Assembly: GCA_977016875.1 (NCBI GenBank)
Contig: CDRNST010000004.1
Location: 1,116,001-1,180,000 of the forward strand
Direction of reading: 5' to 3'
Source: Pavona decussata
Taxonomy: Eukaryota
DNA length: 64,000 nucleotides
Part shown: piece by piece, positions 10,183-51,839 of the stretch
How positions within the stretch are numbered: the stretch's first letter is position 1
Layout: every line of letters starts with the position of its first letter
Translations under genes and position numbers: made by a program
The notes under the pieces: model-generated
What the model saw: the letters and a program-made list of their open reading frames with translations, nothing else
Told to the model about the DNA's origin: nothing
Databases searched by the model: none

Positions 10183-13100
10183 AACCCCGTTATCCATTTA
10201 TTATTAACGGCGGTCGGGCAAGAAAAACAAAATAAGAGAGGTTTTTACCGTGAGAACTGAAAGCTGATAATTTTTTGTGAGTCTGTGAGTTTACTAAATC
10301 ATTTTTCAATATACTAAAAAAAGTTTCAGGAACCCGTACGTGAATCGGTTGTTCGGATGTCACACATTCAGACAGAAAACGCCTTTTTTTTAATTTTTTT
10401 TTTTTATTTTCAATTTTTTTTTTATTTGAAATACGTTATAATAATTTATGCATTAGGTTCGGCTCATGAAAAGTTCGGCGTCTGAATCAAAGCCGTTCCA
10501 AAGCCGAAATTCCCGCCTGAGCCAGGCGGGAAGAACGGCTGAGCCGTTCCAAATTGAAACAACCGTTCTCAAATGATTCAGACGCCGAACTTTTCATGTA
10601 CATAATTCAAGGTATTAGGTTCGGCTCATGACAAGTTCGGCGTCTGAACCAGGCCTAAGCATTCAATCAATTGAGTATATACCATTATGCAAAAGTGCAC
10701 GAAAATTTTGCCTCAGTAAACATAGGGTATTTACACAATATTGGATAAACGTAGTCTTCAGTNNNNNNNNNNNNNNNNNNNNNNNNNNNNNNNNNNNNNN
10801 NNNNNNNNNNNNNNNNNNNNNNNNNNNNNNNNNNNNNNNNNNNNNNNNNNNNNNNNNNNNNNNNNNNNNNNNNNNNNNNNNNNNNNNNNNNNNNNNNNNN
10901 NNNNNNNNNNNNNNNATTGCCGACCAGTCTCCACGTTCTTCGCTTAAAAAGTTGAAACTTCTTTAAAATCGTAAAATGATTTAGTAAACCGACAAACTAG
11001 TAGTAAGGAGGGTCGATATCCAAGATGGCGCAGGAATGGAATGTGAAAATACGGCCTTCTGATTGGTCCATTTTTGTCCTTTGATCGATATCCAGCTCTC
11101 TGATTGGTTAGGGACCATATCGACCCCCTTACTACTCAGACTCACCAAAATCTTATCACCTTCGAGCTTTCAAAGAAACAGCCTTATCGTGAACGGTCTT
11201 TTTCTTATTCTTTCTTTTGATCACGGTCAAAGTGTGTCAGTTTATCTCAGTTACGAGAGTAGGATCTACATCAACCGAAGTGAATTAACTGTTGACTGAC
11301 TTTCAATATAAAATATTTTACCATCCAAATTCATGTCCTACCTGTGAGCAAACTTCAGACCAGACACTGGCTCTAGTTCACCAAGTAACAGCTTTAGTAA
11401 TGTTGTTTTACCCTGTCCGTTTTCACCAACCTACAAGGAAATCAGTACAACTTATTTACTAACCTATAAATCTGTACACACACTGAAACGTGTCCACAAA
11501 ACAACTGATCACAAAACTTACAGTCAAAAGATCTCAACTGATCTGTATAGGTTTGTTACATGTACCAATCAAAAAACGTCAACCTACCAAAGCAATTCTT
11601 GACTCCTGATTTGCGGAAAGACTGACTTTATTGAGAACAACTTTTCCTTTTTCATAGTAGAAGGTTACCTGCACAAGTACATGAAGAAAGGATATTGACA
11701 TAACTCAGAGCCGGGGGGAGACAAAGAACGGCTGCGAGGGAGACTAATTCATCAATGGCTGTGATCGACAGTATCTCAGCCTCCAAGGCTTAAGACTTGA
11801 GTTACCCTCGATAACAGTTAAATGTAGCTAATGAGAAAATAACAGTAATTTGGAAAATCATTAACTTCTCTAGGCAAACAATGTGTTATGCAGCTCTTGA
11901 AAGTGTTTAGACAACTTTTCTGGTATAAAAAGATTTCTTGTTAATATCCCATTCTGGAAACTGTTCTAAACTGATTCTGTATTAAAATTTGGAAGGTGAG
12001 TTTGTTTTCTGCCAAAAAATTCAATACAAGGTGTCTCGTAAAAGTTTTTGAGAATACCTTTAAATATTTAGTGAGTTACGATATCTTCAAAACATAACTA
12101 CCAAAAGATTCATGGGAAAACAGAGCAACCAAAAACTACTGACCTCATCCAGTTGCAAAACAGGGGGAGACAGTTTTTCACATTCAGGAAACCTACAATA
12201 AAGAAAGTAAAGACAACGTGTTATTTATCAAACACGACTTAGCCCCACAATACGATTTACGCCTGAGCTATCACAAAAGTGCGTAGAAATTCTGTATCAA
12301 GCCAAGTGTACCAAAGTACTACACAAGCCAGTGCTCAGGGTAGAGAATAATAACGCTTAAAACGTTTCTGAAAACGAGGGAACCTCTTCTATTTCTCAGA
12401 CAAGGATTGCATAAAAACGGAAACTGGATTTACTATGTGTCAGTAGTTTAGGGTGATACTGTGTAGGAAAAGATCTTAAGCACAACAACTACGGCCTCAT
12501 GCAAGTTAACAATCACAAGAATTCTGATCAGCAAAGATTAGACAATATATTTGACTTACTTGAGAACTACTGGCGGATCCACCACAACTGGCTGAAGATC
12601 CGGACTAAAATGACAGACAACAAATATGAGAATGAAGCAACCTCGCTTACCTAAGGGTGGGGTGGAGGTGGGGTGAAGTGCTGTTCAGTGGGGTGGGATA
12701 GGGGGACTAAATCATGCATTTGACCCATTTCGGATGTAAATAACAAAATAATGCATGGTTACTTTAAGAAAGAAGTGAAGAAATGAGCACTGAAAACAGA
12801 GATTATTGCCTTTGACTAGAAGAACACTGGTATTTACATTCAACAACAAATTCAAGTACACACGTTCAACACTCACTCAGGTTAATTTGAGAAAGAAAAG
12901 AAACCACTGCATGGGAAACAATATTGGAAGGGAATTTTAGAAAGTGTAAAACCTAATGTGCAGTTCTTTGAAACGAGTTTGATTTGCTATAAAGGGTGTT
13001 TAAATTTATTAAAGGAAACACAGTCTAGGTGAGGCAACCTTAAACTAACAACACAGGCCGGGGGAATTTCTGGTCACATTAGTTAAGAAGCCAAATACTA

Positions 13101-31071: not shown

Positions 31072-34000
31072 CTGCATGAAAAATATTTTACGGTTATTAG
31101 TAACTCCTACGCGGTCAAAAACGCGTACGTTAAGTCAGACTAGGACATTGTATACATTTACGTGATAATTAACCTCGTAGTCTTTAACGAATTCTTGTTT
31201 GATCGATATGTAAAGAAAGACTCTAAACCAATCGGTAAAGCCTGCGAATAATTCCACTGTCCCAGATCATTTTAACTTTGAATATCAGTAAATGTGACAA
31301 AACGTAGAGGAAATGTACCCGTAAATTTCTCGGAACACTCGAACAGTTTTCGGCCCCTTAAAGCATTTTTGAATTCCTTTTTTCTATCGATTGGTTGTAG
31401 GCTTTCGTACAAACCACCCCAAAGGAATGCTTAAGCTTGTAAAAGGTTTCAACGTTCTACGCTTCAAAATTAAATTGAAGCTCGAATTTCTGGTATTAAA
31501 CGCTGTGTACGTAAATTTGTGGGCCCGTACCTTGAGAAAGGCAAACCAGAGGCAGAAGTTGAATTTTGGCGACTTCATTTTCGAATTGTTGTTTAGGGTA
31601 TTTGTATGTAAAGGTGTCCCATACCAATCACTGTGAGGTAACTTACACGAATTATATACAACCGCTTGTACTCCTGGCCCCAGTTATTCAAAGAGCGGAT
31701 GACGTTATCCAGCGGATAAGTTGCTCTCCAGCAGATAAAATGTTTTTGTTGGAGGTTGGAGTACATTTTGTCCACTGGATAGCGACTTATCCATTGGATA
31801 AAGTTATCTGCTCTTTGAACAACTGGGGCATGGTGAGATGGGTAACCTTTGCCAAGTAACAATGTTGAGGTGGAAATGTTGCAAAGCGTAACGGCAAGGT
31901 CACACTTTTATATATTTTTTATAGATTTTGAACGAACGAAGGAACGAAGTAACCCACGAACCAACGAATGACGTGATTCCACTTGAAGTCCCTTTAAAAA
32001 TAAAAATAAAAAAGGAAAAAAGAAAGAAATATTTACCTGGGTAGTCATTGCGACGGAAATACTACGAGAGAAACAGAAACAAGGTTAATCTAGTGAATTG
32101 TTTATGCCATATGATGAGATAATGGTTCAGTCACTTAACTTCCTTACTAGGGCAATGCTCCGTGGGAATTAAGCGGTTTCCTCCTACTACTTAAATTTAC
32201 GCTGGAGAGTTAATTGTATTACCACAACAGTTCAAGCACCCTTTTCCAACAGACATAAACGATTTCCGAAGTCATTTGTCCTGGACATTCGTGTGTTGTG
32301 TTTTAAGTAAAAAGAGGCAAACAGGTTTGTATCATGCACATAGCGTTCAGTGGTACAGTTCCACGAGACAATTGGTAAATTATTTATGTATATGCTAAAT
32401 AGTGAGGGGCCTATAATACTCCTGTGAAGGACGCCAGAGACAACTGAATCAGACACGTACACATCCTAGTGTCTGTCAGTGAGGTGGCTATTAAAACACT
32501 TCAGCTGCCTCCGATTAACGGAGCGACTTTTCAGCCTCGTTGCCAAAAATGAGGCAGTACATCAGCGATTCTATTGCGAAAGGAACTTGGATGAGTTCCG
32601 AAAGTTCTGTCGAACTTTCTTCCTCATTTCTTGGTGTAGAACATTAACGAAGGAAACTTCACGCGGTCATAAAAAGTGCCAGAAATAACAAGATTTCACA
32701 CAGATAAGAAACAAGCACAACACCCAAGATAAACTTAGATGAGTTTATCTCGAAGGATAAACAAAACACATTGAATGGTCTTCTGATACCTTAAGCCAGG
32801 GTTTCAGCTTGTCTTCGTCTAACCGGGTATTAAGCTTTAAGGTGTGATCACACCTCAGAGGGTCTGCCGAGTCCAGTGAAATGAAGTGAGCACAGTCAGG
32901 ATGAAGGCAACAGGAAGCATGGTGCCACGAGCAGCCATCGGGTCCGTCCGATTCACCCACACACAGATCACAGCGTGCGCTCAGCCGCCATGTCATGGAG
33001 CGCAGCCACGGACATTGCTGACGAAGACAATCTAGAATGTCTTCAACACATCTGAGACGGAGAGAAAAGTAATCATGGACTAAACAAAAAGAATCCATTT
33101 TTATTTCTTATTTTACTCATCACCAGTGCGCTGAACTGAATTTCGCTCTGGTAGTATCTTACATAACTGTACATACAGAGAAATAAAATAAGAAAAATAC
33201 ATTCTCTTGATAGTGTACTGAACACTACTCTCATCCGCACACAGTCAAATTAATCGAGGCTTGCGAAACATGTAGTGTCCCTTTACATTTGAAACTCGTG
33301 GGAGCTAGGTCATTAACCTAGGGTCAAATAACAAACATCCTTGGTATGTGAGAATGATGTATTATTCAGTAAGTGACACAAGCATACTGGGAAAAAAATT
33401 CGAGTGCTCCTATCAGGAGTCCAACTTAAGACCTTCCGATTATTAGTTCGGATGCTCTACCACTGAGCTATAGGAGACTCGTGGGAGCTAAGGCCATTAA
33501 ACTTGGTATATGTCTAGCTCAGTAGTAGGTCATCGTTCGACTCCTGTTGGGAGAACTCGAATTTTCTTTCTCCGAGTATGCCTGTGTCCCTGACTGAAAA
33601 ATAAATCTATCACTTTTGTCTTTGTTTGTAAACCAACCAACCTGTAAACTTGTTGGCACACAGTAGCAGTCTCTCTCGCTTCATCTTTGCCATCATGAAC
33701 CAAATGAACCATGATCACGCTTTTGAAGCATGCAAACATCAAACTGAAGTCGCTCTGCCTCCCGATAAAAAATCGCGCTGCGTTGGCAAAAAGTTTAGGA
33801 GATCTTGCAGAATACTCCCGAGATGCCCATTGACCAAATAACACCACAAATCTGGCGAAAAAACCATAAGGAATATAGCCAGTGTTGAAGGTGAGGTAGA
33901 CTGGTGCAATCGAACCTTGGACACTTAATCCAGATATTTCATCGTCTGGCTTAGCTGTCAGTATAGATGGTACAAGGTAGAGTGGCTCACCATTTGGGGT

Positions 34001-37000
34001 ATCCCACCGACAAACCAGGTTGGATTTCTCCATAATGGAAAGAAGGGCTTCTTTTGAAACTTTAAGGCTGAGAGTTTGACAAACATAGCTGACAAGATCC
34101 TCCGACAAGATGCCCTTTTTGGCAAGGTTTTGGCGATGCTCCCGGATTACCATTGGTTCTTTCTTCCCGGACACAACTGTTATGATTTGACAAAATACAT
34201 AAATTAACCACTGTGGATCCAGTATGACCAGAGTTTTAGATTCATCAGCCTCATTGAAACAAAGTAACGCGCCACAATCACTCAGAAAGTGCAAAAGCTC
34301 ATCACAGTCTTCGTCTACTTCAAAACAACAAATTCTATCAGCAATTGCCTTGAACTCGGCTTTGGTGACATGTTTGACTCCATTACTGGCTAGACGATGA
34401 AGTACCTTCTCAACATAAAGCCACTGCAGAGGGATTTCCCGCTGTATGTGAGGTAGCGTAGAGGCCACAGCAATGACCGTTTGCCTCAATCTTTGGATAT
34501 TTGGATCCTCTTGTTGGAAAGGCTGCCCAGAACGAGTGTTGTCAACAGCAAACTTCTCATCGACGATGTGAGATGCAAATGCCTTTCTATGAAAACTGTC
34601 CAGGATGGCATTCATAGATGTCCAAGGATCTTCAACAACTTTGTCTGCATGCGTTCCAACTAAGATGACTGGTGGATGGGAAATACCGGAAGCATTCATA
34701 CTGCTGGAACCCTGAAAGGAATGAACCAAGTCCATCCACCTCATAAGGTGATCAAGACTGGATTCACCCCTGCACACCATGTTGGCCCCCTTTCCACAAT
34801 CCCCAGGCAGACTAGTGTCGCCCCTCTTGAATAGGTCTTTGCTCAGATCACATACAAGAAGATACACAGCTTCCTGTGACATGAAGATTGGATGCATGGC
34901 ATGAAAAAGAGATTGACCAGAAAAGTCCCAGATCACCGGCCAAACCTCTTCACCAACAGCAGAGTGTTCTTGTTGGAGGATACCCTCCACCAAGCTGATA
35001 ACTGTCTGTGGCAGATCATCTGAAGACTCAGGATCACTATCGAAGACGTCATCTCGGAAGAATGGCGAAGGAGGCTTCACACCATCATCTCTCTCTTTTA
35101 TTCCTGAAAGCAAAGAGGGAGTCGTATGGGAGTCAAAGAGGGAGTCAGAGGGAGTCAAATGACAATGAAATAGAACTTCTCGTAACACTTTTCATACTTT
35201 GATGCTTACACATTTTCTGCCAATTAAATTGCTTTCTAAAATTTAAAATCACTTTGTTAATGGGGGTTAAAATCAATAAGAGTGAATACATTGGGCATCA
35301 TCAAAGTTACGTACCAACTTCAACTTCCAACAAGAAAGCCATTAAAAAATTCAGGTTTGAAGGGGATTCAAACACATGACCCGTGTGATCAAGTCAGCTG
35401 GGAACTAGTCATTTCTGCGAGTGTAAATTGTACCTGTGGATTATGCATTCCCAGTTCACATTATGTGATATTTCATATCTTCACTTTCACCTATGGATGG
35501 TATCCATCCTCCATGGGTATAATACAAACTCCACAAAATGAGTAGCCCCCAACTGGCTTGATAAGCAATGGTATCTCAGAGACCACGGGTTTGAACTTCG
35601 CTAAAGTCCATATTTTTCAGGCTTTCTTTTTGCAATTTATTTTAAATTGATTGCCCAAATCTAATATACATTCACCATTAATCTGTTGTGGAGACAAGTC
35701 CATATGGTTTCCTACTCCATTGGAGAAAACATTTGCTCCAGAGGGAAGCTCCTGAAAAACAAATGAATCTTCAGCGCACGTCTCACTGTTCCACAGAGGA
35801 CTCTTTCTTGCTGCGTACTTCTTTGGCAAATCAGGAGTACTGGATTGTGTGGGAGAACCTGAAGAGTCATCAGATGCTCCTGACAGCTGCCGCGCCACAA
35901 GCTGAGCACTTTTGTGATCAAAAACAGTGGTGGTGTCATCGACTTGATGCGCTTTCCATGCCTTGATTCCAGCCTTTAACAGAGGTGTATCCATCTCCAC
36001 TCCCTGTGTGCTGGTTTCATGTTTGTTAAACATGTCTCCTTTGAGGGATCTTTTGAGGCTTGTTTTGCCCGCACCGTCCTGACCAATCAGCATAACTCGA
36101 ACACGGATGTCACATGTTTTACCATGTTCTAATGCTCTTTTGTATGCTGCTTTGGCTTTGCTGCCTCTTGCTAACACAGCTGGTGGAATAAGACCTGGGT
36201 AAGAGAGACACAAATGTATACAAACTTAAAATTACATTTCATGCATGAATGTTTCAAATTAAATATACCACTACCACAGAAGACACTGCACTTCGTTTTG
36301 GTTGGTCTGTTCACAACATTTTGAAAGGCCCTTTTAAACATCTAAAAGACCGTTTTCCCTACCCTTTTATAGTTCAGCTCGTGAAGTCCCTAACCTTTCA
36401 TATATGCACCTGACCAGCCTGAAAAAGGCACCCCTTTTTGGCACAGCCTCCCTGTTTAGAAAACCCCCTTTCCCCCTACCCTGGTTGTCACCAGTGTATT
36501 CAGTTGAGCTTACCTCTCTGTTCTTTATCAAACTTGACAGGCCGAGTGAGATTTGTCTTCAAAGAACCACGGTTGCTTTTGTAATACTACAAAGCAAACA
36601 GTTCAATCAGAGATTACTGCATGTAGAGTAGACATACTTATTATATTATTGAAAGAGAGGTGCAGGAGCATTTCCACTATTGATTTAGGTGCTTGCAAGT
36701 CTTAATATTATTGCTACATGTAACAGTTGCCAGCTTTCTTAATAATTGAAAGAGCAAGTCAGGGATGCAGGCTGGGATAAGTTCAAGTAAGCAGACCACC
36801 CCGAGCTTGTGTGATCAGCTCCCCCTTGACTATCAAGGAAGGGGCTGCTAGCATTCTGTTACATGCCAATTCGTATTTGTACCTTTTAGCATTGAACCAA
36901 TAAACAAAAATGAACTATTAGCATGGTGAAATCTTAGTGTAAATTTAAGTAAACACTAGCTGAACTCTTTTATAAAATGGACGATAAAGGTTTTTAGAAA

Positions 37001-40000
37001 GAATTAAACAAATTGACAGACATACCACCTAAGAGACTAAAAAAATAATTTCAAATCAGTTTAACTTTTATTTTCTTTTGTTTGTCTTATTACCATAAAT
37101 TATTTGAAACAACAGGAATAAAAGTCTGCCTGGTTTGAAACATTTTAAGCCAACAACAAAAATAAAACACAATAGGTAGTTTCACTTTTCTTACTAAACC
37201 CTTTAAAAGATCCAGTTACTATGCATATTATAACATACATTGGTGTAGTGTATACGACCATGTTTAAACCAGGCCTAGATGGATCTTCAATACACGGACC
37301 AAACACCCAACACTTAATGCAAAAAGGGCCAGGATTATCCCCTGTTAAGTATTCTGTTGTATTTCTGATCTCATGTATCTCAAGTATTCTGTTGTATTTC
37401 TGATCTCATGTATTTTTAATAACTGTATCCTTAATCACCCAACTCAACCAGTAAGTACTGCACTGACAGTTACAAGCAATATGCCATAACCTTTTTGACT
37501 ACACATCTTTGTTTGAGTGGTACATGTATGTATCCACATATAAGCCATGTCAAACCAGGTTTTTAAGCCAGAATTTGAAAACAGGGCATGCAATAGTTGT
37601 GTCTCTGGTAAAGGACTAGGTAATGGGAGTTCACAAGACAACTGGACAACAGGATGCCCTTCTGACGTAAAAAACCTAGCATCAAACAAACAAACAAACA
37701 CCCCAAAAAGCACAACAAACATAATTCCATCTACGTTATTCCTTGTTAAAATGATATACTGTATTGCTAACAAAAAGAGGTTTAGATAAAGTGTGTGCAA
37801 GGGAAGAATTTGATCCAAGTTAATTTTACCAAAGACCAGGCGGTGTGCGTCACGACCCACAAAGGGTGCTGGGTAAAAACATGGAAATGGCTCATTTGTC
37901 TCTGGTCACGATCGAGTAAATATCTCCCGAACGTAAGACTTATGTCGACTTACAGTTGCACTGAAACTGGGCATTCAAACTTTGCTTCCTTTTCCAAAAA
38001 CTATCACTAAAAAGAGCAATTTGGCAAATTTTAACGGTCTAGTGGCAGCCATAGATGTTTCTTGTTGGATACACAAGGCGATTTCGTTGAGTTATTCCCG
38101 GTTTGGAGACAATCAAAGGCGAAGATTATTAACCTCTTACTAACCAAGCGCGAGGGCCGTACTGGGGAATCTTGGCCCGAGGTCGTGGCAGTACGGAACG
38201 AGCGCAGCGAGGTCCGTACAAAAACGACCGAGGGCCAAGATTCCCCAGTACGGCTTGAGCAAGCTAGGTTAGTAAGTAGTTTATTATATGGCACTCGGAG
38301 CAAACTTGTTTATTTATAAAAAACGCACTTCCGGTCACTTGAATTCAAAGGGTTTCCGTCGTGACGTGTTTTTGATGACGCAAGCAACCCAGAAAGCAGG
38401 AGTTTGAAAACAAATTTACTGAACATTTACATGTAATCAGGTTGATTATAGAAAAGACTTCAAGAACGATTTGTAGCCAAATTTGACGAAAATCTTAACA
38501 GCTGAGGTTTGTTTTTGAAACTCACAAAAGGGTTTCGTCGATCCCAGAAAATTTACTAGGGCATCACAAAGTACGGATCAAGAAAAGGGTGCTGTGAAAA
38601 TCACATTGAACTTTAAAAGAAGTGGCATTAAGTCAATCGTCCTCATCGCTCTCATCTCTGGCTCGGAAACTCGGAAACATTCCATGTTGGAATCAGTCTT
38701 TTGGGTAGTTTCTTTGCAAAGAATGAAAGTATTTTTAGATTTTCTTTTTGCAGTTTAAGCTGTAAATTTTCAAATTTGCCGCTTGTCGTTAACAAAAATA
38801 CACGGCTTATGACCATTTCCATGGAAACGGTCCGTATGGTAAAATCCCGACCAAGAAAGAGCCAATCAGAATGCGTGTATTTACCTCAAGACTACCTTAC
38901 CATATAATAATTATGTTTATTCTTGTACTAGTATTATGTGCCGTCACGTCTGCTTGTGGACACTTTTTTTTTATGTATACATATTTAGACAGCGAGCAGT
39001 CGAGCAGTCCCTTTCTCCTAAGTTCTGTAGCGCATGATGGATCGAGCGAGCTAGCTAGCGGTGAGGCAGCGAGTTAATTTTTGTAATTTGGATAATTTTA
39101 TTAAGTGTCCCTTCGCGCGCAGGATCTGAGGAAAAAGTATGACTGCTCACAGTCTATTTTACATTTCTTTCGATCATTTTCAGTTTGCTTTTTTTATCTC
39201 AGGGTGAAAGAGATCTACATTTCCTTCTTGGATTTCTGGGAGAGAAATAGCATTTGCAAGCCCGTTGGCTTTTCCGGTCAGTTTCCCGGGAGTTGAGCTA
39301 CTTGGTTTACACGATCTCTTCATAGATTCTTTATTAGTTCAACGGCTTTCAACGGAAAAACCATAAGGGGTAGACCTGGGTAGACCCCGAAAATTCCAAA
39401 GTAGAAAGGATAAGCTAGCTTAAAGTGCAAAAGTATTGGCCAAACCCAGCAAGAGTAAGTAGCTTTAGCCTCAAGAAATTCAGTAAATCAACGACCAAAA
39501 CAACATGGCGGCGGGCGCGAGGTCGTCACCTTTGAAATGGCTACAAACGCAAGCAAATGCTTCAGCTTAAAAAGTAACCTAACCAGCATTAAGCCAATTT
39601 GTTCCTCTAACTTTGAAACGAATTTTAACCGGGCAAAATGTCACAGACTTCGTAAATGACGACATTTTCGACGGCTAACCTCTCCAGACTGAAGCTCTTG
39701 GGCACGAAGACTACTGATCAAATAACGCATTCTGATTGGTCGAATTTCGTGACGTACACCGCCTGACCAAAGACCATAAATAAGAATCTAAGCCATTTTA
39801 CTGATAACGAAATGGCAAAAAAAAAAAAATTTAAAAAAAAAAAAAATCAATAAATAAATCAATAATAATAATCATATACATTTCTACTAATTTACTTGAA
39901 ATAAGTGCCACTGGCTTACCTCTACTAACAAAGACAAGGTGTCAAATTGCTGAACATCGTCAATCGTAAAATGATAATTTTTCTTGGTCACCACTCTATA

Positions 40001-43000
40001 ACGGATTGACTTGCCTTTCCACCTATCAAATGAAAACAGCAGTCAAACAGCTTTCTAATACAAGCTTTTACTTTGAGAGGCTGCATAACTACTTGCTCTT
40101 CCCAGTTTTTTTGCTTCATTGCATAAATCTAGTAATTAAAGCTACAGTGGGTTACACGTGACAACTTCTTCCAGTAAGGAAAATTACATTCTAATTGACA
40201 TAGGTGATTAAGAACAAAAAAAGTATACCCAAAATTTCCCTTAAAAAATACCACAAAATACCAAATTTAAGAGATAATTACTTTACACCCAAAAAGATCC
40301 ATGTTTATGTAGTATCATTCCGTAATTCCATGGCTTCAAGGGGTATTTGGGGATGAATACCTCAAGTAATACTTCAAAACAGTCAAAAATATATCCCTTG
40401 TAATATTTGGACGATTTGGAAATATTGTGAGAGGTATTTATCCCAGATATCCTGTAGTATAGATCTGTTTATACTACAAGGCTGAGATCTGTGGATCACA
40501 GCACTGTCTGTATATTTATTCACATGCAAACGATTAACTTTCTTAGTAGAACATGTAAATTTCATACAAAAAGAATTGGGAATTTGGCCGACAAAAAATT
40601 CAAAGAAACTACATGTAAAATTTTTCTCATGTTTTTCTGAGTTACAGAAAGTTCATCAAAGTTTGCTTTATCTTTTTAAATGTAGCCAAATTTCTATGCT
40701 TCAGCAGAATGACCTAAAGATTATTCTGGCTTAACTAACTTGTCAGCTATGGAAGTGCTTAACTTTTTGCCACCAGTTTTGTTTCTTTCAGCACCATGCT
40801 AGGCAAGGGCAAGGTTATAGAGATGCTTTCCAGTAAAAGATTAAATATCACTTGTAGTCTTTTCAACCCTGAAGGCGATGTCATGGCCACCATCAAGGAA
40901 TTCCTGTCTGGTCTGTTTATAATTATAATTTTACATTTTATTAAACCTGCATGGAGATTACTGGGTACACAAAGAAACAAGAATTAATTAACTCACCACA
41001 AGTGGAGACAATAATCTCCTGGGTACGTGATGCACTCTCTGATAACAAACATTCCATCTCCTACACTGACATCTTTGACTACAGATTCCACCTCACTTGC
41101 AGACATTTTACCAATGTACCACCTAAGTAAATAAACAAGATAATTATTGGTTATACAAACATTTAACTCTAGAAGCCACGAGGATATACAATAATGGAGA
41201 CAATTTGCTTCTTCCAGGTAGTTTACATCCATGTCAATTAATAACCATTTGCAGCCCCAGCCACCTGACAAAGTGAACAAAAACTTTTATCTGCAACTTA
41301 ACAACCACATCAAGCTGAGTGGAAGGGTACCTGGGAAGTCTAGGGGCCTCCACTGTGTCGGACCCTAGACAGTAACATGCTCCCATGACTGGCAATTCCG
41401 GCAACCCAGCCGTGAGCCCCCATGCACAGTCATCCTGACACCCAACACACTGCACTTAAGCAGTGGAAGAGGGGAAAAAAGGGGGGAGGGGGAGGGGCAG
41501 AAAAACCAAGACAAACCACACAGAAACTCCACAGAAATCGCCATGCTTGAACATACTGCCACAATGCAGTGCTCTGTGCGTGCATGGTGCTAACCACAGT
41601 GCTGCTGATCGTACGATGAATGCCAGCTTTTCTTTGTTAGCTTAGTTTTAATTGCATTTAACTGCATATAATCATGTGAAAACAAGATTTATATTTTTAC
41701 ATTAAGTAAGAAATCCATTGTTGAACATTTACAGTCATGCAACATGTCACATTTCTGACACATAATGTCATATTTAAAGAATTAAAGAAGAATGAGAATA
41801 TCTGGTTATGAGACAAGTGTCCTGTCTGTTCCAATGCCTGCTATATAATTATATGACCAACATTTTTCAAGACAAACAACACCTGCAGGAATAATTGGGT
41901 TCAGAACAGGACACAAACCCAACCCCCCCCCCACCCCCAATTGTGTTAACATATAATTACAATCACTGTCTAATGCACCTACTCTTCATTCCAAGGGTGA
42001 ACCTGGACATAGATTTTTGAGTTGTCTACGATGTGATGGTCACCAAGAAGAAATTCATTCATAACCAGAGGTTTGCCTTCCAGGCGTAACAACTGACAGT
42101 CTGTAGGTACTCCACTCAATTCTGCAATCTGTTCTTTAAGAGATTGCACTTGATTAAAAAGATTTGTCAGCAGAGAGTATGTCTCTGAACCAACTACCAC
42201 ACGAAGCTGGATTTGTGAGGATGCCGTAGTTTGAAGGCGATGCCTTGGCAGAGTACTGTTTGTACATGAACCTATTGTGTAGAGAAAAAAGAGGGATTCA
42301 CCTATATTTATGGCCTGGCCCCAGTAATATGTTCAAAGAATGGACAACTTTATTTAATGGATAAGACGCTATCTAGCAGGTAAAATGTATTGGTTGAAGT
42401 ATGTTTTATTCACTGTCAGATAGCGATTTATCTTCTAAATAGAGTTATCCGCTCTGGTTTCTATAGACACAAAACTTATACAGCCATGTCAAATTGTTTG
42501 GTAGTACTAGATACAGTGTAGGATAAAAGGAGTAGCAGGCAGCAAGGGCCTGGAAATAGCCACTTTAAATGGTCCATTTTTGACAGCTTTCAGATAACAC
42601 TCTTTAAGAAATTTTTATTTCAAATAATACCATATTTATTTGATTAACTGCCCACCTTTGAATAAGCACCCACCTCGAATAAGCACCCATCCCACCCCCT
42701 CCAAACAAAAAACGTTTTTGTACAGTACTAACCCACTTGCAGTAAGAGGAGCATCGGTTGTGTTCCAACTTGGTTTTAGATACAGTAGTCAATGAACATA
42801 TATCTTGTTTATGGCTTGTTTATGTTAGTTTCTGTTCTTTGTTTTGTCTTGTTGAAGAGAAGTAAACTTGTTTTCCCTTGTTTTGTTATTCTCTAAAAGT
42901 GTCCTTACTTGCTGAAAATGCATGTTGGGGAAATAATAAGCGCCCACCCTCAAATAAGAACCCACCTCAAATAAGTGCCTACCCTCATGGGCCCAAAATT

Positions 43001-46000
43001 AAACAAGCGCCCAGGGTGGTTAATCGAATAAATACGGTATGTCATTTTCCACCAGTGCATGTAGCTTACGTGGGAAAAGCAAAGGCTATTTATTAAACAA
43101 GTATTTGAAAACAAGGTCAGGTGCAAAACTATAAAAATTGAATGTTCCAGACAAATTTGTGCACCTCCGTTTATTGAGTTGAAGGTATAGAGTTGAGACC
43201 GTTTTTCCTGCTTACAATCATTTGAACTAGTATTTCGTATTAATAAGTTTAAAGAAAAGGCAACAAATATTTCATTGTACTTGGCAAAATTGCTGATCAT
43301 TTTGACAGGACTGCTTATGGTAGTGAAAGGAACAGAAAAGAACATAATTGATGCAAAACTACTTAAACTACACTACATACCTTCCCCTGAATACAATGAG
43401 GACCCATCTGTGCAGTCATGGGACTCTAATCTGCTCACTGGTTCAGTTAGTTTGATTGGCAGTCCTTTATTGTTCTGGTAAAACTGTTAAAGACACAAGG
43501 AAAACTCATGAAAGCAATCTGGTTACAAAAAACTAATAAAAGTGGTTGAAATCCTATTATTTTATATAAGTTGCTTTATTTTTATATTATAGTTTATACA
43601 AATTATTTCAAATTACTGTTGATACTGATTGAAATAAACAGTGTTTCAGAGCACTTTTTTAAGAAAATTGTCTGCTGCAGGAATAAGGGTTAGTTTCAAA
43701 ATTTTGTTAATTTGTATAGTGTATTTTAATAGACGTTTCTGTAGTCTAAGAGCCTGAAATTCTCTCAATTATGAGGAGAAAAAAGTAATGGCTGGATTTC
43801 TCCTGTTTACTCTCTTTCTAACTTGCATTCTACTTGATTAACTTGTGATTGAACCTGGTTCATTTGTGTTTTGCTAAATTGCAAAAAAAAAAAAACAAAT
43901 TGACGCAAGTTTTTTAGCCTATTATTTTATATAAGTTGCTTTATTTTTATATTATAGTTTATACAAATTATTTCAAATTACTGTTGATACTGATTGAAAT
44001 AAACAGTGTTTCAGAGCACTTTTTTAAGAAAATTGTCTGCTGCAGGAATAAGGGTTAGTTTCAAAATTTTGTTAATTTGTATAGTGTATTTTAATAGACG
44101 TTTCTGTAGTCTAAGAGCCTGAAATTCTCTCAATTATGAGGAGAAAAAAGTAATGGCTGGATTTCTCCTGTTTACTCTCTTTCTAACTTGCATTCTACTT
44201 GATTAACTTGTGATTGAACCTGGTTCATTTGTGTTTTGCTAAATTGCAAAAAAAAAAAAAAACAAATTGACGCAAGTTTTTTAGCTGCCGTCTTCTTATT
44301 AACGATAAATTCTGTCATAACATTGTCAAAGTTGTTGTGAATCCATGAGCCACAGTCTTTTATGCAGTGCATTTCCAGCAACTTTGACAATCTTATGACA
44401 AAATTCATCATCAGTAAGAGGACAAATGCATCAACCCGGACAATCCCGGGGGGGGGGGGGGGGGGGGCTGGTACTTGGGTTCAGTTTTGCTCTGTATGTG
44501 CCGCTGGCCTCTCATAACTCCCGCTCCATTATAGTCTATTTTGTGGCCAGTTACAGACCCCATCTTAGTCACTTTTGGGAAAATGTAATTTTTGCGATCC
44601 CAACTAAGTCAACTTTCTATTTATGCATCTACTTTATCAATCCTTTTCATAGGTCATCCTAAAATGAATTGACACATTTTAAATTGAATGAAGAACACTT
44701 TACTTTTCACATACAGTACAAGCATTCCTAATCTTCCTAGAATTTTCTTACCCCAAAAACCCAAAAATGCGCTACCCCATTCTAGTAACTCTATTGAAAA
44801 TGCAACTCCATTCTAGTCAATCCAGTCATGAAAATGCGACCCCATCCAACGGCACATTCCCATTAGCCACTTATGAAGTAAGTACCCCCCCCCCCCCCCC
44901 GCCGGGGAGACAATCCAAGGACACACAAGACAATAAATCATGTCTCAAATGCAATGCTGTTAAACCTCTTAACTGCCCTATTTCTTGTTGTACATTATTT
45001 GTATGTGATTCACATTCATTCACTTACTTTTAGTCTTTTTGACCTCCCAAAACTGCAGTAATTGGCAATTACGCTATTGTGGTGCCCCTGCCTTAGTAAT
45101 AGTTGTTTTCCCCCTGTTATCTTGTCGTGTTGTTGTTTTTGTGTGTGTGTGTCTGTGTGTGTCTATAATAATTACTGTTACACATAGGTGAAGCTAATAA
45201 AAAAATAAAAATAAATAAAAACTGGTGACTGATGTCAATTTGTTAAATAGAATATTGCCACGAGTTGTTACAGCTGAATTTACAAATTTTCCATCAAATA
45301 ATTATGTTCTAATTATACCTTACAATGTTTATTCTGAGAGTGCAGAATTGCAGGATTATAACAAACAAATATGAAATAAATGTGATGTTATGTTTATAGC
45401 CTGGTGAATAAATGATTGACATATTTTTTTCCGTCAGTGACATACAAGTAGGCATACTCAGAAAAAGAAAATCTGAATTCTCCCAGCAGGAGTTCAACAG
45501 ATGACCTTCCAATATTTTCTTACTTAATTAAGTTTGGATGCCCTACCATGAAACTAAGTTCATGTGACAAACAACCTTCAAACTGCTAGTATTTGAATGT
45601 TGAAGGGTGGTATATGTGAAAGAAAAGGGTATATGCGAAAGAAATGTGGTGTTATGTTTCAAGTCTGGTGAATAGTATAGAAGTTTAATGACTTAGCTCC
45701 CACGAGTCTCCTTTAGCTCAGCAGTAGAGCATCCGAACTAGTAATCAGAAGGTCATAGGCTTGACTCTTGTTGGGAGAACTGGGATTTTCTTTTCTGAGT
45801 ACTGTATGCCTGTGAAACTGAATACATCTAGCAAATAAAAATATATTGGAGCAACAGAATGCCTTTTTGCAAACATGATGATTATACAGTACTTTTAGTA
45901 AAATTGTTCTGCACAATACACCTGATAATGCTGAATTATATTTATTTTACCTTCTATAACAGCAACTTACAAAAACGTTCCATTTTGCACCACCAATTCA

Positions 46001-49000
46001 TCATGAATTCTTATGTTCTGCTATGAAAATTTGACTTCAAAGCTTATTTTTTTTCTGTTTAGTTAAAGAGGAGGGGTGGGGGGGGGGGGGGTAAATAGAG
46101 CTTTTAGGTATTTACAAGTACAGCAACTTCTATAAGATGTGTATTTAAAAACAAATAAAGTCTGTATTACCGTGACCATCTCATCAATGCTGTTAAAAAA
46201 GTGTTGCTCATTAATGGTGAACATCATGTTCTTTTTACAAATCACTCTGTAATGCCTGATTTTGCCATCAATGCTGTAAAAAAAAGAGAAAAAACCACAG
46301 TTATCCTGTCCCAACAACAACTAAAAATTGAGCAATGAATAAAAATAATCAGGATATGCTAATATTAAAGTAAATTCTGTATTAAATGGTCACCCTTAAT
46401 TCAAGGGAACTCCAAACTTGATGACTTGCTACAGGACCACAGTGGTTAACAAGAAATCAACAAAAAAAATTAATATAACTTGTTGGAAGTGACTTAATCA
46501 CAAAACAAAACACTTCACAAAACAACAATATTTAATGACCAAATTCCATGGTTTTGTGGAAACTTGAGCAAAAAAGGGGATTTTTCATGCACTTTTGTAA
46601 CTTGAATGCAACCCCTCCCTTGATTAGTTGGCCACATTGTTCCAGTTGAACAAGTTGAAATATAATCATGAAGTAGCTCTGAGTTACATGATTTCCTAGT
46701 TTTAATGCAAAAATAGAGCCTTTTCTAGTGAGGGAGGGGAGGGGGCAGAAACAGTACTAATCTCAGGTTAGGGACTTAAACTATTAAATTAGCTCAACTC
46801 ATTGGGGGGGGGGGAGGTGGGGTGGTTAAAAAATCTGAGAGGCATACAGTGAGGAAAAATTGGCCACTTAGTAAGCCTTAATGGATTTCTTGTTATCATT
46901 AAATTAACCAAGCCAGTAACATACCAAACAAACAGGACATAGTCACCAGGAAAATTTACACTTTCTTTGACAAGAAACTTCCCATTGCTAGCGGAAGACA
47001 TGACTTTCTCTGCCTGGTCACGGGTAATTTTACCATGGAACCAACTTCAAAAAGAAACAAATAAAAAAACAATAATTATTAAAAAAGACAGTACTAACAA
47101 TTACTCAAAATTGTTCTCTGTAAAATTTGAGTCAAAGGACAAGTGCCAAATCAGGCTTTAAATATTATAATACTAAAATTATTTTTTATTACAAAAGGTT
47201 GACTAGTCTTATATGACCATGTCACATCTAACATAACATCAGAAGCATATACGCTTAAAAAAAAAACCCTACGTTTAAGTACTATTACAGTACCAATGGA
47301 AACCAGAGGATGAACTAGCAAACAAGTGTGCCCTTCCACCATAGGCAGAACAAAATTAATGTAAAATCAGTCGTCAAATGTATTGATTCCATCAATACAT
47401 TGCCAATGTTATCGGTGAGTTCCATCCCCCCATTGTCTGTCGCATTGCACAAGATTGGAAGCATTGGAAAAAGCCTGCGGCTGTCTGCATTGCAATCTGC
47501 TTCAGGAGTGAGTGTCAATGGAAATTAAAGAAATGCTCTGCTTAGATATTATAAAAAATGCCCAACCAATTGGTGCGACGTTTGGTTGGATCAGTAGAGG
47601 TACATGTAAAATTACAAATAGGCTGCAAGAAGTCCCACGAGGCTGTGGTACTTAATGTTACAACATTCACCTTGTCCGACTGATTGATTGAGTCAGAATT
47701 GTATGTTCTACCTACACGTGTTTGAGTGCACAACATAATGAACATATAACACTTGGCCATGGTCACCAGTAAGCTTTTGGTATACTGGTGCTATGTGTAT
47801 GCTCTGGAACATGTGAAAAAGGTGGCTAAGTAACCAAATCACTTGGTGAATTTGGCAGTGAGCCAGTCTTTATATCTGATGCAGGGTTATGCTACATTTG
47901 TATTCTCAAAACTAGTCTATGTAATGTCAATCACAGGATTACTGTAGCTGCCAAATCAACCAGCGCTCACTGTGTAAAGTTTTATTTACTGGAGTTATTA
48001 ACACCAAAGATTGTGTGGTCAGGAAAATAATTGAGCTCGTCCCAGCATGGCAAGCAAGTATCTTATGGTGTCACTCCAGTGAATAAAACTTTATATAGTA
48101 AGCGCTGGTTGATTTAATGGCTTCATTGGTCCTTATCGGTGATTCTCCATACAGGTAAGTCCAAAAACGCAACAATACAATGCCAGTTACAGTTGGCAAG
48201 TACACACCCTAAAATATGAAATTTACAACAACGCTAACTGAATTTATACGAAATAGGAGTTAAATACCATCATGCATGTGAAAGTGAAAGAAAATAATGA
48301 AAAAAAAATGTGCATCGCATGGTAACAGTTACTATAGCATATTTATTATTGCCATGTTGCCCTAGTGATTTGCTATTCGGAGTGATACAGCTGGGTGGAG
48401 ACAGAAAATGTGAAGTAAACTACGTGTATATTAAGGTTACCGTGTACCTTCACGGGTGACTTCAGTTAAATGGATATAGCGCCTCTCAGTTACATCACAG
48501 ATACCCAAAACCCTATATCAAATTAAAGCTTATAGAACTGGGTATTCAAATATTTCATTGCTTTTTCAAGAAAATAAATTCCCAGGTTTCCCGTAAAGTC
48601 GGAACTTGAAGGTCCAGGTCATTGTTCGAGAGTTCCAACTCAATGCGATTTTTATATTTTGTTTGTTTTCTCCAGGTTTTCTCCAGGTCAGGATCCCAAA
48701 AGCTTAAAAAACGTGTCGGGGTTTTCCATAATTCAATTTCGCTCAAAAGTTACAAATCATTTTCAAAACTGCGAGAAAACCATGCGGAGAGAACGCACGG
48801 AAATGGCTTCCAAGGAAAGAATTTTTACAATTATCGAATTCCCCAACACACTTTTGTTGGTTATATATTTTTCTAGCATCTGGCCCAATTTTACTGAAAT
48901 CGGCCAAATCGTTGTTGAGTTGTAACTCTTGAAAGTGTCTCCTGCAAGCGAAAATTAAAATTTGAGAAAACAGCGCTTGGAAAAAAATTCTCGCCACACA

Positions 49001-51839
49001 AACAAGTACCGCCCCCTAACGTCTTTATGGAAAATTAGCCAATCATTTTGCAAGCTACATTTTCTTCAGGTCACTTCCTGTGAAAATTTACTCACAGTTT
49101 TGCCGTACTCTCCTTCCAGAGTAATCAACTCTTTCACCATTTTGTTGGATATCTGTGGTGTTTGTTGTACGTGCACGTCAATTTTGTAATCTGCAATGAT
49201 TATGGGAAAAACAAAATGGGGACTGAAGCCGACCTCATCATGCAAAGCTGTTGGGCCGAAGCAGAAGCGGCTGAGGAGGGTAAAATTATAAGCGTTACGG
49301 AATTATCGGGGAACCACCGTATTAAACCGCATGTATTTTCTCAGTCAAATCAAAAATTCTTGCTACTCTTCATTTAGCCTGTGAACAGGCTCCCAAGTGG
49401 GGTATAGCTAGGGCGAAAAGAAAAATCGGCCAGCCGGGGAAGCGGAGAGCTTTTTGTCATCGCCCTATGCCCCACTTGGGAGCCTGTTCACAGGCTACTC
49501 TTCAGTCGAAAAGCCAGTGAATAAATCTATTCGCGCGAAATATTGTTGAAAATAGCGAAGTTTCGAAATTGCTCATCGAAAGTTCGGGTGAAAATTCGCT
49601 CTTGAAAACTCCCTTCTCTGGAAGATTTTAACACCTTTACCTACTTTAAAGTGTAGCATAAAGCTTTTGTCTTCTTTTATGTCAGTGTCGTACTCGAACA
49701 AACGCAACTTCTTCCACTAAATACAGGACATTCGAAGTGCAAGAACATGAGGGATTCAAGACTATAGACAGACCGTTCGCGCAAATATCACAACGGGTGG
49801 TTACACCAGCAGCAATATGCTGTTAATCAAAGTAAAATTTAACTTCCGGTGGAAATCGCTTACGTCCCAATTTCTCGGCAAATACTCACTCTTTTTCGAA
49901 AATTCTTTTTTTGTTTGTAAGAACTTACTGGGAAGTTTATTTTTATCTAAAAAAATGAAAATCCAAAAATTTTCTCTCTGAAGGTACACGGTAACTTTTA
50001 CTTTAAGAAAACAGCAAAGCAGCAGGGATCAAATCAATTAGCACTCCCACAGATCAAACATCTTATGCAGTGAACCATTACTCCACTGCACCTTTACATG
50101 TTTATCTCAATCTCAAAACATAGTTTTCTTTGGCTGTGCTGGCTGGCAAACTATATAAGTTTGTTTTTCCCGTTGTGATCTTTTTCTTTTTTTTTCTTTG
50201 AAGAGGTGGGTAAGCAGGTCTACCGATCGGTGTATTTCACAAATATTTTTGCCCAGGTTTTGGATAATTTCAGAGTAAAATTGTAATTGGCTTTGGAGAT
50301 CCTGCAAATGCAGCGGATTGTGGATTTATCGATTTTTTTCAGTCCCGGATTTTGGTTTTTGCCGATTATAAAATTCGGATCATGGATCTCTCCATTTTTT
50401 TCTCTATGTTTTCATGGCCGAAACATTGGATTGATTGTTGATTACATTCTTGTTCTTAATCCCTGAGAAACTTTGCTAAAACATAACCAGTACAAGGTAA
50501 CTGTTAAAAAATAATTTGTGGATTCGGATTTGAGTAAATTTTTTTACAGATCGATGGATTTGGGTGTTAAATTATAATAGACTGGCGGATTTGCGTACCC
50601 CTATTCAAACCCCTCTTTGAAGGTAAGCAAAATATGGATTTAGTTAAACTCTTTCCATCAGTACTAAGACCTGACAGGCTCTCTAAATGTTAGTCACTTC
50701 ATTGAGAGACAAGCTTTGTCTGTACAACAATTAAGAAAAATTTTTCCCCATCCCCCAACTGACCCATGTTTTTTATTTCAAAATGTTATGGTTTGTTTCT
50801 AAGGTAACCTTTATATACGTTTTAAGTGTTAACTAAAATAACTCTGACATCCCTATACCATATAACCCTCATAACCACAACTTCAAACACCTTTTAGAGT
50901 CTTGGGAAAGATAAACAAGAAATACTCCAGATTATTTGTTGTCTACATGTATTAATCTTTTTTTCTAAATATTACAATAAAAAATTGCCATTCCACAAAT
51001 GGGTTGATCATCTGTAGCAAACAGGGGTGTTTTCAGTTCACATTAATCTGGTAGCATTAGTGAATTCTCCAAAATGTTAATTAAAAAAATAAGAACCAAT
51101 GTATGGGGTATAAACTCAGGGAAATGAATTCAAAATTGGCACATATCTTTTCACAAAACCCTTTTCCACCAAAATTTATTTAATTACCGGCCCTCTTTCC
51201 TCTCTCATAGTAATACTTTAAAACGTAAGCCTATATTTGTTGATTGTTAATTAGCATTTTGGAGGTCACGTCCCAAGCATGCACATGTACATGTACATTG
51301 TAACTTATAATTTGAATTAAATTTTAAACTCACTTGAGATGCCATGGATGAATCTGCACGTACAAGACTGAGCCATGGTTCACACAGAACTCCTCCAAAG
51401 TATTGTACAATATTGTCAGCCCTTTATTGACAAAACACGACAAGTCAACCACACGAAGAAATAAACTCTCGGCAGGCAGACCCAAAATGGTAGACAATTG
51501 CTTCCTCAAATCAAAAATCCTTGCGGAATTTCCCCCTTCCGGGATAATGCTAAGAACTTGCCCAGTTTCCGTTACCACCTTGATGTAAAATAAAGTCGAG
51601 TTATTCTCTTTGCACGATAAATTGACGATAGTTTTCGGCTTTAACAAGTCCCCCAAACAAATGTGACTGCCATTTTTAACTTCCACCTTCGATCCATTTT
51701 GAGAAATATGGAGAATTTGAGCGGAAACTGGCAGCGAAGTCGCCTGGGAAATCTTCTCTTTTAGGCTTTCCACGGTATCCAAAGGAGTCACTTCAACCGC
51801 AATCCTCTTTGCATTTAACAAATCCACGAAAACTTGCAT
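30761..51839 (-). CDS. Roco-family protein Ubl-Ubl-SH2-Ubl-SH2-Roc-COR-Cys/His-rich-Death, 13 exons, 4002-nt CDS (about 1333 aa)
   Basis: Exons 51839-51334, 47044-46925, 46273-46171, 43483-43381, 42271-41983, 41122-40997, 40022-39920, 36586-36514, 36194-35676, 35103-33642, 33051-32790, 32061-32037, 31071-30761. All introns are GT-AG with matching phases (2,2,0,1,2,2,0,1,1,2,0,1), and the frame is open from ATG to TAA. Confidence 0.85.
32230..32690 (-). mobile_element. Degenerate non-LTR retrotransposon (CR1/L2-like) reverse-transcriptase fragment in intron 11 of the Roco gene
   Basis: [22 protein letters not shown]...RYVHDTNL is a decayed [22 protein letters not shown]...YADDT motif. Confidence 0.75.
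33370..33600. mobile_element. tRNA-derived SINE-like repeat present as a divergent inverted pair; relatives at about 45430-45820, 53910-54035 and 15830-16330
   Basis: tagctcagtggtagagcatccgaact...aaggtc.taggttcgactcct (A-box/B-box-like) on both strands; too degenerate to be a functional tRNA. Confidence 0.65.
33642..36194 (-). CDS. Roco gene exons 9-10: Roc GTPase and COR domain
   Basis: G1 [10 protein letters not shown]2 STQGVE, G3 WDFSGQ, G4 GTHADK, G5-like VDN. COR motifs [44 protein letters not shown]. Confidence 0.92.
36514..42271 (-). CDS. Roco gene exons 5-8: Ubl-3 and SH2-2
   Basis: Ubl: [14 protein letters not shown]...[28 protein letters not shown]...[21 protein letters not shown]2: WYIGKMS...[30 protein letters not shown]...[19 protein letters not shown]...LTRPV. 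Confidence 0.85.
43381..51839 (-). CDS. Roco gene exons 1-4: tandem Ubl-1/Ubl-2 and SH2-1
   Basis: Ubiquitin-like start [43 protein letters not shown]; second Ubl ending [11 protein letters not shown]2: [13 protein letters not shown]...[30 protein letters not shown]...[19 protein letters not shown]...LTEPV. Confidence 0.85.
43553..44285. repeat. Near-perfect 365-bp tandem duplication in Roco intron 3
   Basis: 43553-43917 is repeated from 43918; the only visible difference is poly-A length. Confidence 0.9.
48435..49996. mobile_element. About 1.56-kb non-autonomous TIR element at a TTAA-like site (Kolobok/piggyBac-like)
   Basis: TTAA|GGTTACCGTGTACCTTCA ... TGAAGGTACACGGTAACT|TTTA; no transposase ORF. 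Confidence 0.65.
49375..49497. mobile_element. TAG...CTA-ended MITE with 9-bp TSD (AcademH-like), nested in the previous element
   Basis: CTCTTCATT|TAGCCTGTGAACAGGCTCCCAAGTGGGG ... CCCCACTTGGGAGCCTGTTCACAGGCTA|CTCTTCAGT. Confidence 0.75.
50203..50615. mobile_element. MITE with GAGG...CCTC termini and 6-bp TSD TTTGAA
   Basis: TTTGAA|GAGGTGGG ... AAACCCCTC|TTTGAA. Confidence 0.65.

Follow-up and report, generated by a model that had tools for sequence, protein, structure and literature searches.

How the N-terminus of one protein came to carry, twice over, a ubiquitin-like domain (Ubl) followed directly by an SH2 domain is the question raised by a window of 64,000 nucleotides (nt) in the genome of Pavona decussata (assembly of 602 Mb; contig CDRNST010000004.1, positions 1116001-1180000). 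The window is the whole stretch of DNA analysed, and positions are counted within it unless stated otherwise. The exons in question make up the N-terminal half of a ROCO-type gene that is present in a single copy and probably serves in coral signalling. Exon-by-exon Pfam searches and the fold of exon 1 give the domain order di-Ubl, SH2, Ubl, SH2, Roc GTPase, COR and Death domain. The original prediction, made from the sequence of the window, was that a four-exon Ubl-SH2 cassette had been duplicated internally. The analysis described below points the same way: the Ubl-SH2 block is likely an old, retained, within-gene tandem duplication. Duplications of this sort are commonplace in gene evolution; what is unusual is the architecture of the protein and a Ubl-SH2 unit that is possibly fixed.

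Direct reading of the sequence places exons 1-8 on the minus strand, all with GT-AG splice sites and with the phase series 2,2,0,1 occurring twice, which bears out the predicted exon coordinates. The features of the gene are as follows.

51839-51334, minus strand: exon 1, 506 nt counted from the ATG; Ubl-1a and Ubl-1b; ends ..YVQIHPWHL plus 2 nt; 3' phase 2.
51342..51362, minus strand: YVQIHPW codons at the end of Ubl-1b, one of two genome-wide matches to the motif pattern.
47044-46925, minus strand: exon 2, 120 nt; N-terminal half of the first SH2 (SH2-1); phase 2 at both ends; Pfam SH2.
46273-46171, minus strand: exon 3, 103 nt; middle of SH2-1; 3' phase 0; Pfam SH2 positions 43-74.
43483-43381, minus strand: exon 4, 103 nt; C-terminal end of SH2-1 and linker; 3' phase 1.
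42271-41983, minus strand: exon 5, 289 nt; conserved linker (..LPRHRLQT..) and Ubl-2; ends ..YVQVHPWNE plus 2 nt; phase 1 in, phase 2 out.
41991..42011, minus strand: YVQVHPW codons at the end of Ubl-2, the second of the two genome-wide matches.
41122-40997, minus strand: exon 6, 126 nt; N-terminal half of the second SH2 (SH2-2; WYIGK..FVIREC..DYCLHL); phase 2 at both ends; Pfam SH2.
40022-39920, minus strand: exon 7, 103 nt; middle of SH2-2; 3' phase 0; predicted from the sequence.
36586-36514, minus strand: exon 8, 73 nt; C-terminal end of SH2-2; 3' phase 1; predicted from the sequence.
35620..36203, minus strand: start of exon 9; phase-1 acceptor CCCAG|GT near 36203; Roc P-loop GQDGAGKTS; Pfam Roc.

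When joined, exons 1-8 give a stop-free spliced coding sequence of 1423 nt, and the phase-1 acceptor of exon 9 is compatible with the end of exon 8. As predicted, the second cassette (exons 5-8) is symmetric: it comprises 591 nt, or 197 codons, and has a phase-1 intron on either side. Both HPW-ending Ubls stop three residues before the first Trp of the SH2 that follows, the junction being HPW-HLN-W in cassette 1 and HPW-NEE-W in cassette 2.

Fourteen sequencing runs contain 25-62% of the words from an exon-rich stretch and are RNA-like in this respect. Contigs from four probable RNA runs, belonging to four studies, were aligned to positions 41045-47044 only. Spliced contigs confirmed the joints 46925|46273 (exons 2/3), 46171|43483 (3/4), 43381|42271 (4/5) and 41983|41122 (5/6), all of them GT..AG on the minus strand; at these four joints, transcript junctions thus agree with the predicted ones. 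One 1628-nt contig extends 715 nt past exon 2, which is consistent with exon 1 plus a leader of ca. 209 nt, and 220 nt past exon 6 at its other end. Joints 1/2, 6/7, 7/8 and 8/9 are based on canonical splice sites and have the same positions and phases in those orthologous loci that reach them. In the same RNA-like runs, short and very deep contigs map to three intronic stretches (42845-43044, 44445-44844 and 45645-45844), with a coverage of up to ~2400x compared with 10-50x for exons; these stretches are probably dispersed repeats transcribed elsewhere.

The kinship of the two cassettes can be seen first at the Ubl-SH2 junction. A degenerate DNA pattern describing YVQ[I/V]HPW retrieved exactly two matches from the 602-Mb genome, one in each cassette of this gene; a reversed control pattern retrieved none. 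No other Ubl paralogue was found when the genome was searched with exons 1 and 5. In pairwise comparison of cassette with cassette, the Ubls are 27% identical (E 1e-6) and the three SH2 pieces 36%, 42% (exon 3 against exon 7) and 47% identical, and the Ubl-1b and Ubl-2 profiles each have the other as their best match, at about 18-30 bits.

We built SH2 trees from spliced exons using IQ-TREE with the LG+C20 model. The tree of 34 rows includes 24 other SH2s of the same genome; in the PLC-gamma-like, GRB2-like and CRK-like rows of this tree, an uncertain exon junction was set to X. SH2-1 and SH2-2 came out as sisters with support of 54/94 in a tree of 22 rows, 61/97.6 in a tree of 27 rows and 98/98 in the 34-row tree, rather than grouping with unrelated SH2 families. 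The next branch outside this pair in the 34-row tree is the SH2 of a CSK-like gene (support 66/89), and approximately unbiased (AU) tests marginally rejected a pairing of the CSK-like SH2 with either SH2-1 (p 0.047) or SH2-2 (p 0.029). The pairing of the two SH2s in the tree and the restriction of the junction motif to this gene both argue for the internal duplication that had been proposed.

The phases of the flanking introns indicate what was repeated. The 1-1 symmetry holds only for Ubl and SH2 taken together; a block consisting of SH2 exons only has phase 2 at one end and phase 1 at the other and, therefore, is not repeatable in frame. Since only the Ubl-SH2 block is phase-symmetric, the joint travel of the two domains is explained.

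Several observations weigh against a duplication of the entire block. The Ubl-1b/Ubl-2 scores drop to background when the last nine residues are removed, and the body of Ubl-2 scores higher with ubiquitin and with Ubl-1a than with Ubl-1b. Since the signal of Ubl kinship is confined to the last nine residues, the Ubl bodies give no independent support. Raw identities place SH2-1 no nearer to SH2-2 (33-42%) than to the CSK-like SH2 (38-42%), and in an exon-wise search of the genome the N-terminal half of SH2-1 matched ten other SH2 exons better than it matched SH2-2; judged by sequence only, this half is about equally near SHP2, RasGAP and CSK. The sister support was weak until rows were added to the tree, and the p-values of the AU tests are only marginal. 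The correspondence of cassette 2 to exon 1 is limited to the 3' half of that exon. The supposed equivalence of exons 1-4 to exons 5-8 is true of the intron phases, but an extra N-terminal Ubl in exon 1 precludes an exon-for-exon match; moreover, since no intron separates Ubl-1a from Ubl-1b, cassette 2 must have gained a new phase-1 acceptor. Finally, no single-cassette relative showing the ancestral state was found.

The Ubl comparisons bear directly on an alternative that we consider unlikely, namely, that only the three-exon SH2 block was duplicated and that the two Ubls are of separate origin, with the ..YVQxHPW ending and the three-residue spacer having converged through a common Ubl-SH2 interface. 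One would then expect, as is observed, a Ubl similarity limited to the last nine residues, and Ubl-2 is indeed Pfam-typical while Ubl-1b is unrecognised by Pfam. However, a block with a phase-2 intron on one side and a phase-1 intron on the other would cause a frameshift if repeated, the motif is encoded in the Ubl exon and not in the SH2 exon, and seven residues that recur nowhere else in the genome would be hard to gain twice.

Phase 1-1 symmetric exon modules are established in metazoan exon shuffling, and the second cassette, located between phase-1 introns and with a length that is a multiple of three, resembles them. It differs from them in that it consists of four exons with internal phases 2,2,0 rather than of a single symmetric exon, and in that no second gene carrying the cassette was found. 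Two separate shuffling events, each importing a Ubl-SH2 cassette from genes that already carried the module, appear improbable. They would be favoured by the phase compatibility of the cassette, by the lack of specific likeness between the Ubl bodies and by an SH2 identity of only 33-42% within the gene, but a donor is missing, as neither the motif pattern nor either of the two Ubl exons recurs in the genome outside this gene. Database searches with exons 1 and 5 returned only single-exon genomic open reading frames (ORFs), which are orthologues of exon 1 or exon 5, and polyubiquitins, with no full-length spliced relative among the matches. The 98/98 pairing of the two SH2s likewise speaks against independent import and for duplication within the gene.

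Orthologous loci bear on the age of this duplication. Five were read, of which three (L031, L046 and L047) cover both cassettes through the Roc exon, L048 extends to exon 5 and L032 to exon 3; the last two end upstream of the second SH2. Intron phases are kept in all five. Exon-1-like ORFs form 28 clusters (53-94% identity) and exon-5-like ORFs 18 clusters (62-89%) from many assemblies, with junction motifs kept. SH2-2 of the window groups with the SH2-2 of other species (98/94), from which it follows that the duplication is older than the split of all species sampled. Orthologous SH2s are 58-85% (SH2-1) and 38-66% (SH2-2) identical to those of the window. That the duplication is old, and that both diverged copies were retained, thus agrees with the original prediction, given the presence of both cassettes in the three loci read through to Roc and the low SH2 identity within the gene. 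All 10 cassettes compared, from six species, have a spacer of three residues between Ubl and SH2 (HP[W/Y]-xxx-W).

Exon lengths are conserved to different degrees. Exon 3 is 103 nt long in all six species examined. The orthologue of exon 7 has 100 nt in L031, L046 and L047 compared with 103 nt in the window, i.e., the window has one codon more, in the beta-D/E region of SH2-2; the difference is a lineage-specific gain or loss of one codon. In L046 and L047, the orthologue of exon 8 has the same 73 nt as in the window, and the length of the entire second cassette is 591 nt in the window, 591 nt in L046 and 579 nt in L047, always a multiple of three. The linker upstream of Ubl-2 (42228-42245, minus strand, exon 5) contains an R-x-R-L-x-T sequence that is kept in the window and in L031, L046, L047 and L048 (PRHRLQT, PRDRLHT, PRARLQT twice and RSRLQT). 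This sequence resembles the sites of basophilic kinases of the AGC type and would be a candidate regulatory phosphosite.

The shared intron positions and exon sizes, on which the original prediction had relied, proved to be less informative. Out of ten SH2 N-terminal exons inspected in the genome, nine start with "ag|N TGG", that is, after an intron of phase 2 that leaves one base ahead of the Trp codon, and eight end in phase 2 just after beta-C; many Pfam SH2 matches in the genome also break at profile positions 40-44. Two of the three intron positions of the cassette SH2s are therefore common to most inspected SH2 genes and should be viewed as family traits. The third, a phase-0 intron located directly before [HFY]Y, was found in only one of about two dozen other SH2s inspected, and so was the 103-nt exon. 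This SH2 belongs to the CSK-like gene (L012; G000:C151:580000-589999, plus strand), which has SH3, SH2 and kinase exons and whose SH2 N-terminal exon finds its best PDB matches in CSK. Its SH2 has the same three intron positions as both cassettes, the same phases 2,2,0 and a middle exon of exactly 103 nt. A long TAT/TAC microsatellite lies directly upstream of its SH2 acceptor site.

Since the phase pattern and the 103-nt exon are also present in the CSK-like gene, by themselves they do not demonstrate internal duplication. The three matching SH2 splits were thus correctly noted, but two of them are generic to SH2 genes and all three recur in the CSK-like gene. The equality of the 103-nt middle exons, true in the window, was dropped as a diagnostic of duplication for the same reason and because SH2-2 has a 100-nt middle exon in three orthologues; the match of 103 to 103 in this genome is then partly coincidence. 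The general caution is that shared phases and equal exon sizes between SH2s are mostly inherited family traits and provide no evidence of recent common origin. What the 2,2,0 pattern and the 103-nt exon do point to is a CSK-type SH2 as the putative source of the cassette SH2s. The cassettes share with the CSK-like gene the split positions, their phases and the size of the middle exon, and the CSK-like SH2 is the nearest outgroup of their SH2s. They differ from the SH3-SH2-kinase order of the CSK family in having a Ubl in front of the SH2 and neither SH3 nor kinase, and also in that the FLVRES Arg is replaced by Lys in SH2-1 and the alphaA Arg is missing from SH2-2. That the two cassettes have no specific kinship at all, their phases and exon size being generic SH2 gene structure and their SH2s coming from unrelated families, is hardly credible, for although the phase-2 boundaries are as widespread as described and the 103-nt exon recurs in the CSK-like gene, the tree unites the two SH2s with a support of 98/98, no inspected gene other than the CSK-like one shares the third intron position, and the unique junction motif ties the cassettes together.

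The domain assignments themselves come from Pfam runs on single exons, with cut-offs of 21 bits for SH2 (PF00017), 25.4 bits for ubiquitin (PF00240), 27 for Roc and 35.3 for COR-A. Exons 2 and 6 score above the SH2 cut-off (44.3 and 31.8 bits); exon 3 alone reaches 18.8 bits, and exon 7 alone gave no Pfam SH2 match. Ubl-1a (residues 3-43 of exon 1) scores 30.5 bits and Ubl-2 36.8 bits as ubiquitin, with no Pfam match for Ubl-1b. Roc (27.3 and 30.7 bits), COR-A (53.1 bits) and Death domain matches are encoded by exons downstream of exon 8, on the same strand. No SH3 or kinase Pfam match was obtained in the exons scanned.

Exon 1 codes for two Ubls rather than one, with no intron between them: Ubl-1a and the HPW-ending Ubl-1b. 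An AlphaFold2 model of this exon, based on 28 orthologous ORFs, has a predicted local distance difference test score (pLDDT) of 88.7 and a predicted template modelling score (pTM) of 0.82 and consists of two beta-grasp halves with the order beta-beta-alpha-beta-beta..beta. When submitted to Foldseek, it matched linear di-ubiquitin and ISG15 over ~165 columns, covering both halves (E about 1e-11, probability 1.00). Exon 1 is therefore predicted to form a di-Ubl, i.e., an ISG15-like head on a ROCO protein, with the two Ubls in fixed mutual orientation. It differs from ISG15 and linear di-ubiquitin, to which sequence identity is 16-26%, in lacking LRGG and in that the second Ubl ends in HPW and leads straight into the SH2. 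In profile comparison, Ubl-1a is closest to ubiquitin, and only Ubl-1b corresponds to Ubl-2. None of the three Ubls has a C-terminal LRGG for conjugation: Ubl-1b and Ubl-2 end in ..YVQ[I/V]HPW followed by SH2, and Ubl-1a passes into Ubl-1b without GG.

The two SH2 copies differ in the classical arginines of the phosphotyrosine pocket. In SH2-1 (46927-47043, minus strand), Lys replaces the betaB5 Arg of the FLVRES motif in all six species (FLVKES/FLIKES), and the alphaA Arg is kept. SH2-2 (40999-41121, minus strand) has no alphaA Arg; its betaB5 residue is Arg in the window, L046 and L047 and Lys in L031. The full canonical pair of pocket arginines is thus present in neither copy.

From these data, we can propose the following history. 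A Ubl exon ending in ..YVQxHPW would have been joined, via the phase-2 intron located one base upstream of the SH2 Trp codon, to a three-exon CSK-type SH2, and the resulting four-exon block would then have been duplicated in tandem within the gene; this order of events is the one we infer. Both copies have been kept, and they differ in their pocket arginines. The invariant spacer and motif suggest that the Ubl may be packed together with the SH2 into a single rigid unit, and the two modules might serve as a docking pair through which the Roc-COR switch and the Death domain reach phosphorylated or other partners. More tentatively, Ubl-HPW-xxx-SH2 could be an undescribed supradomain, in which the last Ubl strand and the invariant spacer fix the Ubl on the SH2; two such units with complementary pocket defects could then make up a paired, non-canonical reader that controls a Roc-COR-Death switch in the cell-death or immune signalling of corals. 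We regard this last proposal as possible but doubtful.

With the known ROCO proteins DAPK1, LRRK2 and MFHAS1, the gene shares Roc followed by COR-A in the same reading direction, and, as in DAPK1, a C-terminal Death domain. It differs from them by its di-Ubl-SH2-Ubl-SH2 N-terminus and by the absence of any kinase, leucine-rich repeat or ankyrin region among the features seen. A full-text literature search, which was not exhaustive, revealed no paper on a Ubl-SH2 ROCO protein or on SH2 intron phases. A ROCO protein that has no kinase but carries a Death domain and a pair of Ubl-SH2 units would link docking modules of the phosphotyrosine type to a GTPase/Death-domain switch. As for gene evolution, the locus provides a clean and datable case of a multi-exon domain block repeated inside a gene.

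Three minor features of the window may be mentioned. A run of N is located at positions 10763-10915. Between COR and the Death domain, an open stretch rich in Cys and His (32748-33107, minus strand), with no Pfam match, may be a zinc-binding insert. In the intron between exons 3 and 4, adjoining exon 4, a 365-bp unit is present in two tandem copies of 99% identity (43553-44285), which looks like a recent local duplication.

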